This document shows, piece after piece, positions 8,264-44,050 of a DNA stretch of 64,000 nt (positions within the stretch are counted from its first letter, which is position 1; each line of letters begins with the position of its first letter). The position numbers and the translations under genes are program-made. Origin of the DNA: Rhodosorus marinus CCMP1338 (taxonomy: Eukaryota; Plantae; Rhodophyta); contig JAMWBK010000006.1 of assembly GCA_029953675.1 (NCBI GenBank), forward strand, positions 2,108,001 to 2,172,000, given 5' to 3'. Under the pieces are notes generated by a model. That model ran no database searches, had not been told where the DNA came from, and saw only the letters and a list, made by a program, of their open reading frames with translations.

Positions 8264-8353
8264 CAATCCTACAAGAGAACCCTCGTCAGTAGCTGACAAC
8301 CCCAAACACAATCCTACAAGAGAACCCTCGTCAGTAGCTGACAACCCCAAACA
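8264..8353. repeat. Perfect 45-bp tandem duplication upstream of the ZIP start
   Basis: caatcctacaagagaaccctcgtcagtagctgacaaccccaaaca at 8264-8308 and 8309-8353. Confidence 0.95.
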
Positions 8354-22305: not shown

Positions 22306-23312
22306 TAGCGCATACATGCGTTGCTTCGCACATACGACGCAGCATCGGCTCCCGGAGGATTGTCCGTGCTTTTACGATGTTGTAAAAGTGTAAGAGCATC
22401 AGGAGCCTTTTCCTTTCAATTTAGTGATGAGCGATTAGCACTTAATATACATATAGTTGGTTGAAGTAAAAACCCTACTTCAACGTCAATGCTTTCATGC
22501 ATGTAATGCATAAGAGCGAGCTTCCACATCAACGGAGAGGGCAGCTGTGGTCGCCATATGGGAAACCGCAGGCAGTTAACCGCAGTAATCGTCCTCTGTG
22601 GGTCAGCTACCTTGACAAAACAGAAACAGATTGCTATTCAGAACGAACTCTCTCTTAAATCGGAGAAGGTCGACTACAAAGCAGGCAACTCGGATCTGTT
22701 TAGGCTTGAACTCTCTAGTCATTCGTCGATCAGTTTTCATAAAACGTCCGCCTTCCAAAATTACTTCAATGGTGTTAACGACCTCGCTCAGGTTTGCTCA
22801 CAGCGGTTCTCGTTGAAGACCATAAATGGAACATGAAAGCGAGGATCACCTTGAACTCGATTTTCTGTCACATGGCGGACCGCTCTTCAAGAAAACCGCA
22901 TCCTCCTCAATTGCTTCGTTGAGTCTGCCCTTGTCGGTCGAAACTCTTGTTAAGGAAGATGGTGGATGGGAATCTCAAAGCAAGAGAAGCAGATCACCTA
23001 ATGAAAATTTGCCCTTTCTAGCATAACGCAGGCCTTTCTTCCAAAAAAAAAGAAAGCAGCCTTCTGCTCCAAATCACTCAATGGAGTTCAGCTCTCGCCC
23101 AGGCCTATGGAACAGTACGGTTGGTGAAGAGAACGGCTCGCTCAGCCTCTGCGAGCAACGCTATCGTTTGTGAACAAGCTGTTCAGACTCTCAAAAGCGA
23201 AGAGAGGCAATCCACCCCAAAACAAGCATCTAAACTCACGTCATGTCTTCTCACATTACGTCAATGCGGTTCACCTCTCCGGACAGGCCTTGTGTGAGTA
23301 AACAGTTTTAAC

Positions 23313-23463
23313 TCTCTGGGAAGTGCTCAGAATAGCTACCACCTCACTGGAAAGAGTAGACCGAAAAGTAGCCCAGCTCAAGCGGAGCTCTTAAGCGATA
23401 GTTGGTAGAAGCTCTCTTACCCAGGCCCGACTGACTTTGCATCGCGTTCATCAAGCTTTCGAC
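23313..23463. repeat. Diverged ~150-nt element, copy 1 (upstream of NDUFS6)
   Basis: Aligns end to end with 24111-24254: gggaagtgctca...ggaaagag...ccgaaaag...cccagctc...taagcgatag...gaagctctcttac...gactga...cgttcatcaagcttt. Confidence 0.9.
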
Positions 23464-23748
23464 AATTTGTAGATCGAGAGACCGCAAGAGGATGATGGAA
23501 ATAATTATGTATAAGTGTTCTATGACGGGATGGTTTTGAGGATGGTGGCTAGTCAGAGTATGTTCTAGGAGCCCTTTAAGGTTTTGTGGAGAATGATGAG
23601 AGAGAGAGAGAGAGAGTGAGGGAGGCTTGGAGTGAAGTGGGGTTGTGTGCATAGGGTGTGGTCATTTTATTTTTTCTTTTCGGGTTGAGGAATTTTTGGG
23701 GGGTTTGCAAAAGGTTAGGTTTCAGGTTGCTTGGGTTGGTTTTTTGAG

Positions 23749-24444
23749 ATGGCGAGTGGTAGGCTTGGAGGGGGGTATCGAATACTATTGAGTGCTGTTC
23801 GGTCTGGTTCAGTACGGTCTGGGTCTGCTCGTGACAAGAGCTTTGGTTTGGCTCGTGTTTCGATGTCGACTTTGCACACCCCTCTGGGAAGCGTTCCTGA
23901 GGGGACGAGTCGCGAGGAGGTGAGGTCGAAGTGGCATAGCAACGCTATGGATTTGGTCGATGAAATTAAGCCTGTTGCTGTGGAAGGGAGAGTTGCTACA
24001 TGTGATGGGGGTAAGTTTGAAAACTAAAAAAGGTCAAACCTCGCAAAAGTATTCTCCTCCTGTTTCCATTCCGATTTCGAAGCGCCATCCCGTTCTTGCT
24101 TTTGCTTTACCTCCGGGAAGTGCTCAAAATAGCTGCGACTCTGCCTGGAAAGAGCAGGCCGAAAAGCAGCCCAGCTCCAGGTGTAAGCGATAGCTGGTTG
24201 AAGCTCTCTTACACAGTTTGGACTGAGTTGCCTCACGTTCATCAAGCTTTGGACTCAGCTGATTTATTGATTGAGGCACCCTGGATTCTCGTCTAAGACC
24301 CGTTTGCTAATCCTATTCTGATATGTACTCCTTTGAAAAGGTGGAGGCGCTTTGGGACATCCGATCGAATATATCAAGCTGGACAACCCCTATCCATCGG
24401 TTTGCAAGTACTGTGGCAACCGGTTTGTACAAAAGCATCATTAA
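23749..24444 (+). CDS. NDUFS6: NADH:ubiquinone oxidoreductase 13-kDa subunit (zf-CHCC)
   Basis: Exon 1 (23749-24010) ends in PVAVEGRVATCDG. Exon 2 (24341-24444) reads GGGALGHPIEYIKLDNPYPSVCKYCGNRF, completing the C-H-C-C zinc site. The intron is 330 nt. Confidence 0.93.
24111..24254. repeat. Diverged ~150-nt element, copy 2 (inside the NDUFS6 intron); candidate structured ncRNA
   Basis: Paralogue of 23313-23463. See findings. Confidence 0.9.
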
Positions 24445-25685: not shown

Positions 25686-26973
25686 TTCTCCTCTAGATAG
25701 TATCAAAAGACAAAAGTAGAAACAGGAATCCAACCACAACAAACCCCTATTCCACACTCTCACTCCCGCGTTCCACCAGCAGCTCCCCAGCCAGCAACCC
25801 AAATCCACATCCCCTTTTTAAGACGATACTTCACACCGCCTGCTTTTTCACCTAAATTGGTCATCAAAAATTTTCAACCAGTCGAAAGAATCTCTGCCAT
25901 TCCGCACGAGAACTGCAAACCATTCACATTCCCCCACCCCCCTTCCCCATGTTCCTTTCAAATCGCTTGAATCCTCCTACCCAAAAATTGGATCTATCTA
26001 AATCCTCGATTATTTTCCTACAATTCAAAAGAACACCATGTCGAACACAATAAACAATCCGGAAGTCCAAGGTTTTCAGTTCCGTTGTCAACAAAAAACC
26101 ATATGCATTTTAAGGGGGGGAAAATGGGTGCTTTTTAGGGTTCATGCCGATGGCGCATGCCGTTTCACCCCTTCGCAATGTTACCCCTTTATAAAATTCC
26201 TTGTAAGATGGTCTACGGATTAACTGTTTGAAGCTCTTCAACTTTTGTTCCGTTTAGTTTACCCCTTTAGCATGTACGCTTAAATTGTACAAATTACCAG
26301 CTAACCCCCTAGGATAGAGTAGTATATCCGAATGCAAACAGTTCCAATATTTTGCATTGGGATCGGAAGGGAAAGAGAGCTCTGAGGGCGAGAAGCATCA
26401 GGATGCGAAAACAAACACCCGCGCGCCAAATAAACCCCTGAAAAGTCCACTTTCCTCGAAAAATATCCCAGACTGATGGTTTTCCCAAGGGGTATGTGCG
26501 TGAGATTAAACAGGTATGGCCAAATTAGTCCTGAAATTTTATATTTTTTGCCCCTTGCTTAGGATTTTCCTGTTCCGCTATTGCTCGGATAGGGGGGGGG
26601 AAGCAACCAGAAATTGACCCCCTCACCCCCCTCTTCCCCGCCCCTGCGAGATTCGCATTCTTCAAGATCGAGAAGATCCCAAATCGAGCTCTCAAGGACA
26701 ATAAAAAGAAACAAAAAACAAATAAAACAATAGAATTCAATCTTTTCATGATCGACAATGTCCCCCCACCTAGAAAAACCTGAAAGGATGCTTCAACGTA
26801 TATACGAGGAGGAAACTTATTAAATGGTAGTTAGATCGTAACTATCCATACAACACGCGGCGGTAGTTGATTGGTTATATCAAATATCAATACGACAGTG
26901 TGTCTTTTCGAGTAAGGACAGCCTGTCCGTTCTTTGTCTAAACATATGAGAACCCCCCGAGAGATCTCACAAA

Positions 26974-27321
26974 ACACGTCCCAAGTGTATGCCCCCCCTG
27001 GGTACCGTCTCAATTATTCCAGAATTCAAGGTTTACTTTCCTCCTAATTACTCCCTAATATAGGTATTTTATCCCAAAACTAACTTTCGTTTTTCTAATT
27101 CTGGTTCTTCTTCCTTACTTGTTTCTTCTCTACCTTAAAGCTAACCTCGTAAGGGTCGGGGATTCCATCGTATTTAGGCACTACTTCATCGGGATGTGCA
27201 ATACCGCCGAGACTAAAAGAAGTGTTGTACGTCCATAGATTCTGGTACAGCCCGAGCATAATTTAGCTCAGAAACGGATATTCTGGAAGGTTGAAGTTGC
27301 TTGGAAGGGTAAGACATCACA
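26974..27321 (-). repeat. 3' LTR (clearly alignable part)
   Basis: Aligns with ~28820-29177. On the minus strand it begins TGTGATG, immediately after the purine tract GGTGGGAGGGA (PPT-like, 27322-27332). Confidence 0.8.
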
Positions 27322-28693
27322 TCCCTCCCACCGAAGAGGCGCGGGGTCGGGCAGATTCAGCAGCGCGATGAAAATTAGTGTAGTATCGAATCTGCTTCTT
27401 CGTACTAGCAGTTTGTGGCAACTTATGAGCCGCGAACCATCGAGCATCGGCTACAGTTTCTCCATCAAAGTAAACCAGGTACTCGCTGGTGTGTCTGGTT
27501 TCAGCCGATGTCGAAGTACTGACGTGATTATTCCGGTCGGTGATTCCGTCGTGAAATGCCCAAACTGGGCATTCGGCAACATTATCGTGGACTCCTGTAA
27601 TTTCCTCAGCAGGGAAACGTGGAAAGTTGGATGCATATCCATCTCAGCGGGTAACGTTCGCGTGTAAGCAACAGCATTCACCTTACGTGCGACCTTGAAA
27701 GGTCCGATGTACCGGGGTCTGAAAGGTTTCGGGTCGCGTAGCGGCAGGTTTGTTGTCGATAATAACACCACTTCGACAGTGGAAAACTCCGGGTCACGCC
27801 TACCTGCATCATATCGTACTTTCTGCACTTGCTTAGCATAAAGCATATTATTCCGCGCTTCCGTGTATTGATCGTGTTGATGCCGTAGCAAAACTTCAGC
27901 TGCGTCAGGAAGAGGAGAAAGGGTAGCCTCCTCGGCACGTGGTACAGTTAATGTCCCTGGTAGGTCGAGATTGCGCCAAAAGTTCAAAAGGTGAGTACTT
28001 CGTCGCTTAGAGATTTGAGTGTTGCACACCAGCTCCGTCATGGGTAGATCCGAGGCCCAGGTTGCTTGGATACTCAGTTTGTCCATCCGTCTGGGGATGG
28101 TACGCAGTACTCATGTTGGTTTTTACCCAATCAGGGCGCCTTTTCAGCGACAGTGTCGGCGTTTCCTACTGCGCTCTCCTTTTAACTGCTGTATGGTAGG
28201 AGGTGCCGACTTCGAGACAACCGGATACCTGTCTGGATTTCCCCAACAGACCCGTTGAGCATGTCCCTTTTTACCGCAATAATCGCAGTCAACGTTGGCT
28301 TAGTTCCGTTTCTGCAAGGCTTGTGTTCCGGGTTGATAAGCTGTGACCAGATCTGGTACCTCGGCTTACAGTGGTTTGGGGCTTTGCTTTTCTCGGAATT
28401 TGACAGGGTTGATAAGGTGGTCACGAACGGGTGGGGGGGAGTTTAGGGAGGCGCCTGCGCCTGACCTTGCTTTCTCTCCCCTTTTGGGGGTTATGGCGAG
28501 CTTTCGATGGAGCGACTGAGGGTTTATGAGCTATGACCGTTTTGGTTCGGATGAGGTGGAACTAGTGGAGCCCTGACCACTGTGGCAAAAAACAAGGGAG
28601 GGCGCTTACGATGGCGAGAGAGTTCTGCGTGGTGGGTGATGACGTATTCGTTACCGTAAACTTATCCTCGATCTTTTCGATCCCGAGTACCAG

Positions 28694-29177
28694 TGTGAAT
28701 GAGGTAGGAGACCTGGCATTGCGGATGGCGAGCCAGCTGGCAGGCTGATGATCACGAGACGTGCAGGATATATAAGACACGAGATGTGCAGGAGTTATTA
28801 CGCGAGATGGGGACCAGCTAACACGTCCCAAATGTCCACCTGGGTACTGTCCTCAATTAATCCAGAATTCAAGGTTTACTTCCTTCCTAATTACTCTCTA
28901 ATTAGGTAGTTTATCCCAAAGCTAACTTTCCTTTTCTAACTCTGTTTGTTCTTTCTTGTTTCTTCTCTGCGTACAAGGGATCCCCGAAAACATCAGGGAT
29001 TTCATCGTATTTACCGTGCGCCAACATTTATACCCTTACCTCATCGGAATGCGCAATACCGCCGAGACTAAAATAAGTGTCCTACCTCCATAGATTCTGG
29101 CACAGCCTGAGCATAATTTAGCTCAGAAACGGATATTGCTGGAAGGTTGAACTTGGTTGCAAGGCTCAGTCGTCACG
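28694..29177 (-). repeat. 5' LTR with adjacent PBS-like sequence
   Basis: The minus strand ends ...CACA at 28694. One base later comes TGGTACTCGGG (28692-28682), a TGG-starting PBS-like motif. The 5' end reads CGTGACG versus TGTGATG in the other LTR. Confidence 0.75.
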
Positions 29178-40535: not shown

Positions 40536-42150
40536 ATGGGGTGCACTGTGAGTGCCTGTGCGAGTGAGTTTGTTACTCCTTCAGTGGTTTGGTTAATGTG
40601 CTTTTCAGATATTAAGGTGTTTTTTTTTTGTGGCGTGTTTTGTTCGAGAATAGAGCTTTGCAAAAAGGGCGATGGCCCGGAGCTGGATGAGGAGGAGAAG
40701 ATTCGGACGTCGGAAGATTTTCATGGTTTGAGGTTACACTGTGAGTATCGCAAGCTTGATAAACCAGCTTGATTGCGCTTGAGCGTTTTTCAGGGTTTGC
40801 GTAGCCGTTGTCAGTTGCTAATTCATTGTTTGGACATTTGCAGTTTATCGAATTAGGCAGCAGGAGAGTCCCACCTTGATACCCATCCTACGGCCTGCCT
40901 TCGTGATTACATTCTATTATATACTCTTCTCCGTATTTTTGGCTGTGGGTATCGTCCTTATCATCCACAGCGGTCAGGTAAGTATTTACATCAAGTCATA
41001 ACTTGGACACGTCTAAATGTTCAAGTCGTCGAGCTGCTGCCAAAACGATAGCAGCTGGATCTTGGTTGGCATGTGGCAACTTTGTTGAGAGCCCTCGACC
41101 AGTAACTAACTCTACGATGTTTTTTCGTGCAGATTGTGTCGCTCGATGATGTGAGATACGACAACATTGATTCTTGTAACGTGGGAGACACGTCAGACGG
41201 CACGACAAACAATTGTCAGGTCGAAATCGAAGTCACGGAGACCTTGAAGGCCCCGTTTTATGTTTACTATGGTCTGACCAATTACCATCAAAACCATAGG
41301 CGATATGTTTCGTCCAGAAGCTCACAGCAACTCGCGGGAGAAGAGCAAACTGATGCACAACTCAGCTCGTGTGAACCAATCCTGTTCTTCGCCAACGGTA
41401 CTGTAATCATTCCATGTGGTCTCACCGCATGGAGTCGATTCAACGGTACGCTTCCTTCGCTCAATCCGTACCTACCGTGTTTACCAAGGACTCGATTGTA
41501 CTGACTCTGCTTTTGTCATCTGAAAATTTGGCAGATACTTTCTCTTTCTGTAAAGATCCGGGATGTGAGAATCAAATCGACTGGACGGATCAGGGTATTG
41601 CGTGGGAAACAGATGAAGACGTAGCCTTCCAACCTGGTCCGTGGACGGACGCGCAGAACGAGCTAATCAACAGCCCGGATTTCATTGTTTGGATGCGATT
41701 GGCGTCGTTTGACACGTTCACCAAACTCTACAGAATCGTGAATGAAGACCTTTCTCCTGGAACGTATTTCATGGACATTGGCTCGAGTAGGATCACCATC
41801 ACAGCGTTAGCACCCCGGCTTTGCCCTTTCTATTCTAACCCCAATTTGCCCTTCCACGATGAATAGATTACCCTGTGAGTGGCTACGACGGCACGAAGTT
41901 CATCGCGATCACAGAAACTTCTTGGTTCGGAACCAGGAAGACATCTCTTGGTATAATCTATCTGTCCATATGTGGGTGTCTTTTTGTGATAGCCACTGCG
42001 CTACTACTTCGCCACCTCATCAAGCCGAGGAGACTCGCGTATGAAGATCTCAACTTGGTGAAAGAATACCTTGTGAAAACCGTGGATATTGGAGATGAGG
42101 AGGTGAAACAGAAAGCCCTCGGCCAACAAAGCAATGCTGTGAATACATAA
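40536..42150 (+). CDS. CDC50: CDC50/LEM3/ALIS P4-ATPase (flippase) beta subunit, multi-exon
   Basis: YRIRQQ, VYYGLTNYHQNHRRYVSSRSSQQLAG, PCGLTAWSRFN|DTF, GIAWETD, FIVWMRLAS, SWFGTRKTSLGIIYL. The first exon is uncertain. Confidence 0.92.
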
Positions 42151-42889: not shown

Positions 42890-44050
42890 TGATCTGCTCG
42901 GGATGTAATCCATGTTCGAATTTTATCGTCTTCATCCCCAAAACGCTTGTCGACTGCATCAAATCGTCCAAGTCATGTGCACTGACTACTTAGCTATCGA
43001 GAAGAACGCAAAAGGGCTGAACATGGTGTTCATCAAGATGATTGAAAAGATCCGTTGGTGGATGTCATCCACATTAGAACCTGCTCGTCTTCTTCCTCAA
43101 AAACAGCTTGCCGAGTACATCAAACGAGTCAAGTCTGCCTGCTTAGCTATCCAGAAGAACGCTGAGGGCTGAACAAGAGCGGCATCAAGATGATTGAATA
43201 GATCCGTTAGTGGGTGTCATCCACATTAGAACCTATTCGTCTTCTTCCTCAAAATCAGCTTGCAGACTAGATCAAATGAGTCAAGTCTTCCCGCTTATCT
43301 ATCCGGAAGAACGCTAAGGGCTGAACAAGAGCGACATCAAGATGATTGAAAAGATCGGTTGGTGGATTTCATCCACATTAGAACCGCTGCACATGATCGA
43401 CATCAAGACGATTGAAAAGATCCGTTGGTGGATGTCATCCACATTAGAACCCCGTCAAAAAAAGGCTTGTGGACTATATCAAATATGTCAAGTCATGTGT
43501 TCTGACTCCCTAGCTATCGAGTGGGCCGCGAAAAGGCTGAACATGGTCGTAATGAAGATGATTGAAAAGATCCGTTGCTGGAAGTCCTCCACATTAGAAC
43601 CCCATCATCTTCTTCCTCAAAAAAAAGCTTGTGGACTACATCAAATCACTCAAGTCAGGTATTCTCACTCCCTAGCTATCGAGTGGGACGCGAAAAGGCT
43701 GAACAACATGATCGTCATCTGAAGATGATTGAAAAGATCCGTCGGTGGATGTCATCCTCATTGGAACCCCATCATCTTCTTCCCCCCAAAAAAGCCAAGT
43801 CAGGTGTTCTCACTCCCTAGCTATCGAGTGGGACGCGAAAAGGCTGAACAACATGATCGTCATCTGAAGATGATTGAAAAGATCCGTCGGTGGATGTCAT
43901 CCTCATTCGAACCCCATCATCTTCTTCCCCGCAAAAAAGCCAAGTCAGGTGTTCTCACTCCCTAGCTATCGAGTGGGACGCGAAAGGCTGAACAACATGA
44001 TCGTCATTTGAAGATGATTGAAAAGATCCGTTAGTAGATGTCATCTACAT
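42890..44050. repeat. Degenerate tandem array of ~145-167-bp units (8 core copies plus a more diverged leading copy)
   Basis: The core atgattgaaaagatccg..gtggatgtcatccac recurs with starts at 43038, 43190, 43342, 43408, 43558, 43725, 43870 and 44014. Confidence 0.95.

Follow-up and report, generated by a model that had tools for sequence, protein, structure and literature searches.

The NDUFS6 locus and its intron

The locus lies on contig JAMWBK010000006.1 of the Rhodosorus marinus assembly GCA_029953675.1, within the 64,000-nucleotide stretch of DNA analysed here, which we refer to as the window. The annotated NDUFS6 gene spans 23749–24444, with MBF1 upstream and a light-harvesting protein (LHC) gene downstream on the opposite strand as its neighbours in the annotation. 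Joining the two exons (Table 1) yields a product of 121 amino acids with a zf-CHCC domain (PF10276), and the only intron interrupts the codon run CDGG|GG.

Table 1. Features of the NDUFS6 locus (positions are those of the window).
Feature	Position	Strand	Description	Basis
Repeat copy 1 (core)	23313–23463		Intergenic, with MBF1 ~1 kb upstream and the NDUFS6 ATG 286 nt downstream	blastn, nhmmer and alignments; outside all annotated genes
NDUFS6 exon 1	23749–24010	+	Between the two repeat copies	Spliced translation 100% identical to R. marinus NDN08_000897
NDUFS6 intron (single)	24011–24340	+	330 nt, GTAAGT...AAAAG (GT..AG), phase 1	
Repeat copy 2 (core)	24111–24254		Same orientation as copy 1, in the NDUFS6 intron	blastn, alignments and intron borders
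NDUFS6 exon 2 with stop codon	24341–24444	+		Spliced frame and annotation

R. marinus is intron-rich for a red alga, with 24,821 introns and 8,392 genes in a genome of 31.2 Mb, 15% of which is repeats (PMC10250338). The four other R. marinus introns that we mapped for comparison, one in the neighbouring LHC gene and three in an LHC paralogue on another contig, are about 82–99 nt long, and against these the NDUFS6 intron is oversized, as the initial annotation of this DNA had remarked. While that annotation was also right to place one copy of a repeat inside the intron, the copy does not fill most of it: copy 2 makes up 44% of the intron (53% if its limits are extended, see below), i.e. about half. 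Without the repeat, the intron would measure about 146–186 nt.

A diverged direct repeat flanks NDUFS6 exon 1

The two copies are direct repeats, 797 bp apart, on either side of NDUFS6 exon 1. That they align end to end had been read by eye, and blastn within the 64-kb window bears this out, with 79.5% identity over 151 columns (E 3e-32). In a global alignment, 120 columns match and 23 carry substitutions, with no strong excess of transitions (10 as compared to 13 transversions), and the 9 gap columns stem from 3 indels. The count of roughly 25 differences made by eye was thus a fair one. The longest run identical in both copies is 15 nt, which is near what we estimate for 80% identity over 150 nt. 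The G+C content of the repeat is 51–53%, as compared to 47.5% in the window and 49% genome-wide (PMC10250338).

Weak similarity reaches beyond the cores to about 23303–23486 for copy 1 and 24100–24283 for copy 2, giving a total repeat length of ~150–180 bases. As judged by alignment, homology ends ~10–20 nt past the core on either side and the flanks farther out are unrelated, which rules out a larger tandem duplication. Copy 1 occupies −436 to −286 relative to the NDUFS6 ATG. In the intron, the core of copy 2 is separated from the 5′ splice site by 100 nt and from the 3′ splice site by 86 nt. With the extended limits these distances shrink to 89 nt and 57 nt, and the repeat-free ends keep GTAAGT, the branch-like motifs CTAAT and CTGAT, and the terminal AG.

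Two further observations concern the fine structure of the copies. The segments 23347–23372 and 24145–24170 differ by T/C in two nearby AG(T/C)AG motifs and by a complementary A/G in GCT(A/G)C, making three coordinated changes between the copies, which may be due to chance. Copy 1 is, furthermore, bracketed by splice-like signals, GTGAGT at 23294 and CTGAC ~40 nt before a TAG at 23470–23472, which would define a 179-nt intron (23294–23472), possibly in an unannotated 5′ UTR of NDUFS6; these signals are absent from copy 2.

Other repeats in the window

The only other non-tandem repeat in the window is a pair of LTR-like direct repeats of ~350 bp each (26973–27320 and 28820–29176, 79% identical), flanking a degenerate integrase/chromodomain open reading frame (ORF) on the minus strand (27451–28086), the annotated 131-aa product of which carries PF24626. 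We take the pair and its ORF to be the remnant of an old LTR retroelement, similar in divergence to the NDUFS6 repeat pair; the ORF has no paralogues among the annotated proteins. A 1.1-kb tandem array (42940–44050), downstream of a gene ending near 42150, is built of units of about 145–152 nt with an internal 66-nt sub-repeat. Its units are 87–96% alike within sub-arrays, and it has no long ORF and no Rfam match. The array is satellite-like, and its unit is nucleosome-sized. Finally, a 45-nt unit is perfectly duplicated in tandem at 8264–8353.

No significant evidence for a conserved RNA fold

The initial annotation had proposed that the repeat may represent a structured RNA family, on the strength of apparent compensatory pairings between the copies and of an H-type pseudoknot, and had named searches of Rfam and RNAalifold as checks. 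At the gathering score, Rfam 15 yielded no family in the whole 64-kb window. When the threshold was relaxed to E≤10, nothing was found in either repeat copy on a 4-kb slice, and a 221-nt slice per copy gave chance-level matches only (E 2.9–9.7), none of them common to both. A tRNA scan was likewise negative. Neither copy, on either strand, folds with a minimum free energy better than that of its dinucleotide shuffles (z of +1.90 and −0.24 for the two copies on the plus strand, +0.68 and −0.52 on the minus strand), and the minimum-energy folds of copy 1 and copy 2 differ. The RNAalifold consensus is weak, at −21.85 kcal/mol over 183 columns, and is equal on both strands.

The stems that had been quoted (GCTAC/GTAGC and others) are all present where they had been reported and can pair in both copies: the three-helix model of the initial annotation allows 17 of 17 pairs in each, with two double changes and one G-U/G-C change; the model was picked after both sequences had been seen. 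Apparent compensatory changes between two sequences arise easily by chance. To gauge this we used a null in which one copy is mutated at random, with substitutions matched to the real ones in number and type. A stem of 5 bp or more that can form in both sequences and includes a double change arose at least once in 46% of the simulated twins on the plus strand and in 69% on the minus strand; the observed compensatory changes are within the range of random substitutions. Two compensatory pairs in the RNAalifold consensus, the number observed, have a p of 0.2–0.28 under this null, and the consensus energy has a p of 0.08–0.88. The covariation term gave p 0.03–0.16, with the plus strand at a marginal 0.03–0.07 from two sequences only. 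Rfam, the shuffle z-scores, the differing folds and the random-substitution null all fail to support a structured RNA, pseudoknot included; two sequences provide no significant evidence for a conserved fold.

Box C/D- and H/ACA-like motifs

The minus strand of both copies carries UUGAUGA (TCATCAA on the plus strand, at 23448–23454 and 24239–24245), and a box D-like CUGA is found in copy 1 only (minus strand, 23327–23330), where copy 2 has UUGA (24124–24127); in both respects the motifs are where they had been read. The heptamer starts with U and not with the purine of the box C consensus RUGAUGA, and we estimate the chance of meeting such a 6-mer in a 150-nt stretch at about 7%, both strands counted. 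The motifs are antisense to the plus-strand host gene NDUFS6, and no UGAUGA occurs on the sense strand. The terminal stem would consist of 2 bp (GC/GC), a 2×2 mismatch and then 2 bp in copy 1 or 1 bp in copy 2, and no C′/D′ boxes were found in either copy. Of the 12 nt beside box D, 4 are not the same in the two copies (GGUGGUAGCUAUU versus AGUCGCAGCUAUU), which argues against a common guide. With its motifs antisense, box D lost in copy 2, no terminal stem to speak of, no internal boxes and a differing putative guide, the repeat does not have the anatomy of a box C/D snoRNA. Neither strand contains an H box (ANANNA) or a terminal ACA common to both copies, and the sole H/ACA match in Rfam is a 23-nt fragment in copy 2 only (E 9.2).

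Coding capacity, transposon hallmarks and copy number

As an alternative to RNA, the initial annotation had considered a decayed coding or transposable-element fragment, pointing to four synonymous differences in one plus-strand frame. These differences are real (AGC/AGT three times and AGG/AGA once), and the coordinated AG(T/C)AG changes noted above are the same as its AGT/AGC changes. The other differences in this frame are mostly non-synonymous, and in copy 1 the frame is broken by one stop codon and two frameshifting indels. No ORF over either copy has a match in Pfam. When the 66-aa ORF that runs over copy 2 on the plus strand was compared with 1.84 billion representative proteins, the only matches were two spurious translated tandem repeats, and none of the ORFs over the repeat is present in a collection of 15 billion proteins. 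The protein searches, together with the broken frame, leave the coding reading without support.

The hallmarks that had been named for a small mobile element, i.e. target-site duplications, terminal inverted repeats, many copies and a transposon protein, were not found either, copies having been sought in 85 kb. The longest match is 4–5 nt for target-site duplications and 5 nt for terminal inverted repeats, in both cases at or below the shuffle mean, and the copies have no A-rich tail or poly(A) and no tRNA-derived head. No third copy was detected in the 64-kb window (blastn at word size 7; nhmmer --max) or in a second R. marinus locus of 20.9 kb on another contig, which was reached through the LHC paralogue, and these two loci have no repeat of any kind in common. 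Scanned as patterns, the conserved blocks of the repeat gave zero matches in metagenome contigs (two blocks), viral contigs and prokaryotic genomes. The R. marinus DNA covered by the copy search amounts to 0.27% of the 31.2-Mb genome, which may leave room for a dispersed family with as many as a few hundred members. Reading the pair as a TRIM or LTR element is rejected since the ‘internal’ region between the direct repeats is the conserved exon 1 of NDUFS6 and LTR termini are absent.

The NDUFS6 intron in other algae

In a related alga (Logan SRR22824290, locus L003, 2168 nt), the convergent NDUFS6–LHC pair is kept, with features at 2004–2099 on the minus strand and 1183–1746 on the plus strand. 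NDUFS6 exon 2 is 81% identical to that of R. marinus and the intron is at the same phase-1 codon position. It is covered for 47 nt before the contig runs into Illumina adapter sequence (TACACGACGCTCTTCCGATCT), and the last 21 nt of the contig are therefore not genomic. Over these 47 nt of intron, the alignment to R. marinus does not exceed that of shuffles (p 0.4). In a probable red alga (Logan SRR23274243, locus L004, 575–793; P0019), NDUFS6 has no intron at CDGG|GG, and the intron is thus not universal; an LHC gene lies ~2.6 kb from NDUFS6 in this alga and synteny is partial, since RPN13 sits between the two. Since the related alga has an intron at the same position, the NDUFS6 intron itself probably existed before the repeat was inserted.

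Discussion

A segment of ~150–180 bp is present twice at this locus, once upstream of NDUFS6 and once inside its intron, and bears no signature of an RNA gene, a coding sequence or a transposon in the searches described above. Non-functional repeated DNA fits these data better than a structured RNA does, and accounts for the oversized intron: insertion of the repeat explains how the intron of a housekeeping gene comes to be three to four times the usual length, with copy 2 roughly doubling it. As to whether the inserted sequence was mobile DNA or a one-off local duplication, we place the one-off event first and a dispersed family second.

Our tentative first choice is that non-coding DNA was duplicated here once, long ago and over a short distance. 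We lean towards it because only two copies exist in the 85 kb covered, because they are close to each other and in the same orientation, and because they show neither transposon termini nor any sign of constraint. A single copying event would have placed the segment ~0.8 kb away without inverting it, most likely during double-strand-break repair or replication template switching, as a by-product (a templated or ‘filler’ insertion). Copy 2 would be the derived one, inserted mid-way in an NDUFS6 intron that was already present and that grew from ~150–185 nt to 330 nt, while the splice sites and the likely branch region were left untouched. Both copies would then have drifted neutrally to about 80% identity, neither of them coding for protein or for a structured RNA. 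Repair-type copying, its direction and neutrality are inferred; the mechanism can no longer be read from the sequence itself, since at ~20% divergence microhomology or short target-site duplications would be eroded.

A low- or medium-copy family of unclassified repeats is a serious rival, because thousands of such fragments exist in this genome and 0.27% of it has been read. The copies would in that case be full or partial copies of an old, non-autonomous mobile element from a short interspersed family, inserted independently or by a local hop, and we regard this as possible, if less probable than the one-off duplication. The published RepeatMasker table lists 6757 unclassified elements (1.26 Mb, mean 186 bp), or ~14 expected per 64 kb if evenly spread (PMC10250338); the ~150–180 bp repeat fits this size class, and its insertion would account for the oversized intron equally well. 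Against such a family stand the missing target-site duplications, terminal inverted repeats, poly(A) and tRNA-like features, the scarcity of DNA transposons (0.03% of the genome) and SINEs (0%) in R. marinus (PMC10250338), the failure to find a third copy in 85 kb or any repeat common to the window and the second locus, and the arrangement of the pair, since by our estimate two members placed at random in 64 kb would fall as close as 0.8 kb and in the same orientation in ~2.5% of cases.

The remaining readings assign the repeat a function or a foreign origin. A lineage-specific small non-coding RNA gene with two paralogues, either an atypically long box C/D-like RNA on the minus strand or an RNA of the plus strand that would be released from the NDUFS6 intron and from a possible 5′-UTR intron farther upstream, is unlikely in our judgement. 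It could draw on the minus-strand motifs, UUGAUGA towards one end of each copy and, in copy 1, CUGA towards the other, on the three helices pairable in both copies with their two double changes, on the marginal plus-strand covariation term, on the 63–86 nt between the end of copy 2 and the 3′ splice site, a distance that is typical of intronic snoRNAs, and on the splice-like signals that bracket copy 1 (GTGAGT, CTGAC and TAG). It is, however, at odds with the lack of any Rfam family even at E≤10, where the chance matches differ between the copies, with folding energies no better than those of shuffles and different minimum-energy folds, with the ease with which random substitutions produce compensatory stems, and with boxes that are antisense to the host intron and closed by a weak terminal stem, with UUGA in place of box D in copy 2, no C′/D′ boxes and no conserved H or ACA boxes. 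As no test shows the pair to be an RNA gene, it has the appearance of an ordinary old duplication. We hold it to be improbable that the two copies form a duplicated cis-regulatory module, with an enhancer or promoter element upstream of NDUFS6 and a second, intronic copy both kept for transcription: their positions relative to the ATG and in the sole intron would suit this role, but the longest identical run is at chance level for 80% identity, and 150 nt at this identity with indels show no sign of constraint. The reading that strikes us as the most improbable is an origin from organelle DNA (NUMT or NUPT), for example from the constant, non-coding part of the mitochondrial minicircles, which would have entered the nuclear genome twice or been duplicated once there. 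NUMTs are unusually abundant in R. marinus and come mostly from non-coding DNA, but the G+C content of the repeat is near the nuclear average whereas that of the minicircles is markedly raised (PMC10250338). A bolder and likewise improbable idea is that the repeat is a ~150-nt lineage-specific non-coding RNA or introner-like mobile sequence of stylonematophycean red algae, with its copies residing in introns (for copy 1, the possible 179-nt 5′-UTR intron) and more of them elsewhere in the genome. If true, a family of intronic copies or a discrete small RNA would bear on the almost unexplored small RNAs of red algae and on mechanisms of intron gain.

Like the intronic box C/D snoRNAs, copy 2 is located in an intron at a snoRNA-like distance from the 3′ splice site, with UGAUGA and, in copy 1, CUGA near opposite ends of the minus strand; unlike them, the repeat has its boxes ~120 nt apart, as compared to a usual total length of 60–120 nt, and it lacks an Rfam match as well as thermodynamic or covariation support. 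Introner elements are repeats that create spliceosomal introns and are known from Micromonas, Aureococcus, dinoflagellates and fungi. The NDUFS6 repeat resembles them in being located inside an unusually long intron of an intron-rich red alga, but copy 2 sits mid-intron and provides neither splice site, the remaining intron sequence matches neither the flanks of copy 1 nor anything in the window, and the same-position intron in the related alga suggests that the intron probably predates the insertion. With the unclassified short repeats of R. marinus (the RepeatModeler class ‘Unknown’) the repeat shares its size class (mean 186 bp), its non-coding nature and its position in or near genes (PMC10250338); it differs from them in that multi-copy membership was not seen in 85 kb, and it carries no hallmark of a transposon class. 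As compared to templated (‘filler DNA’) insertions and short-range dispersed duplications, the repeat is at the long end for filler DNA with its ~150–180 bp, and its junctions are ~20% diverged, so that the defining microhomologies are no longer visible and the mechanism is a putative one. In other respects it resembles them: a nearby sequence is present a second time a few hundred bases off, without transposon termini, a target-site duplication or coding capacity, and the landing site is tolerant DNA, here an intron.
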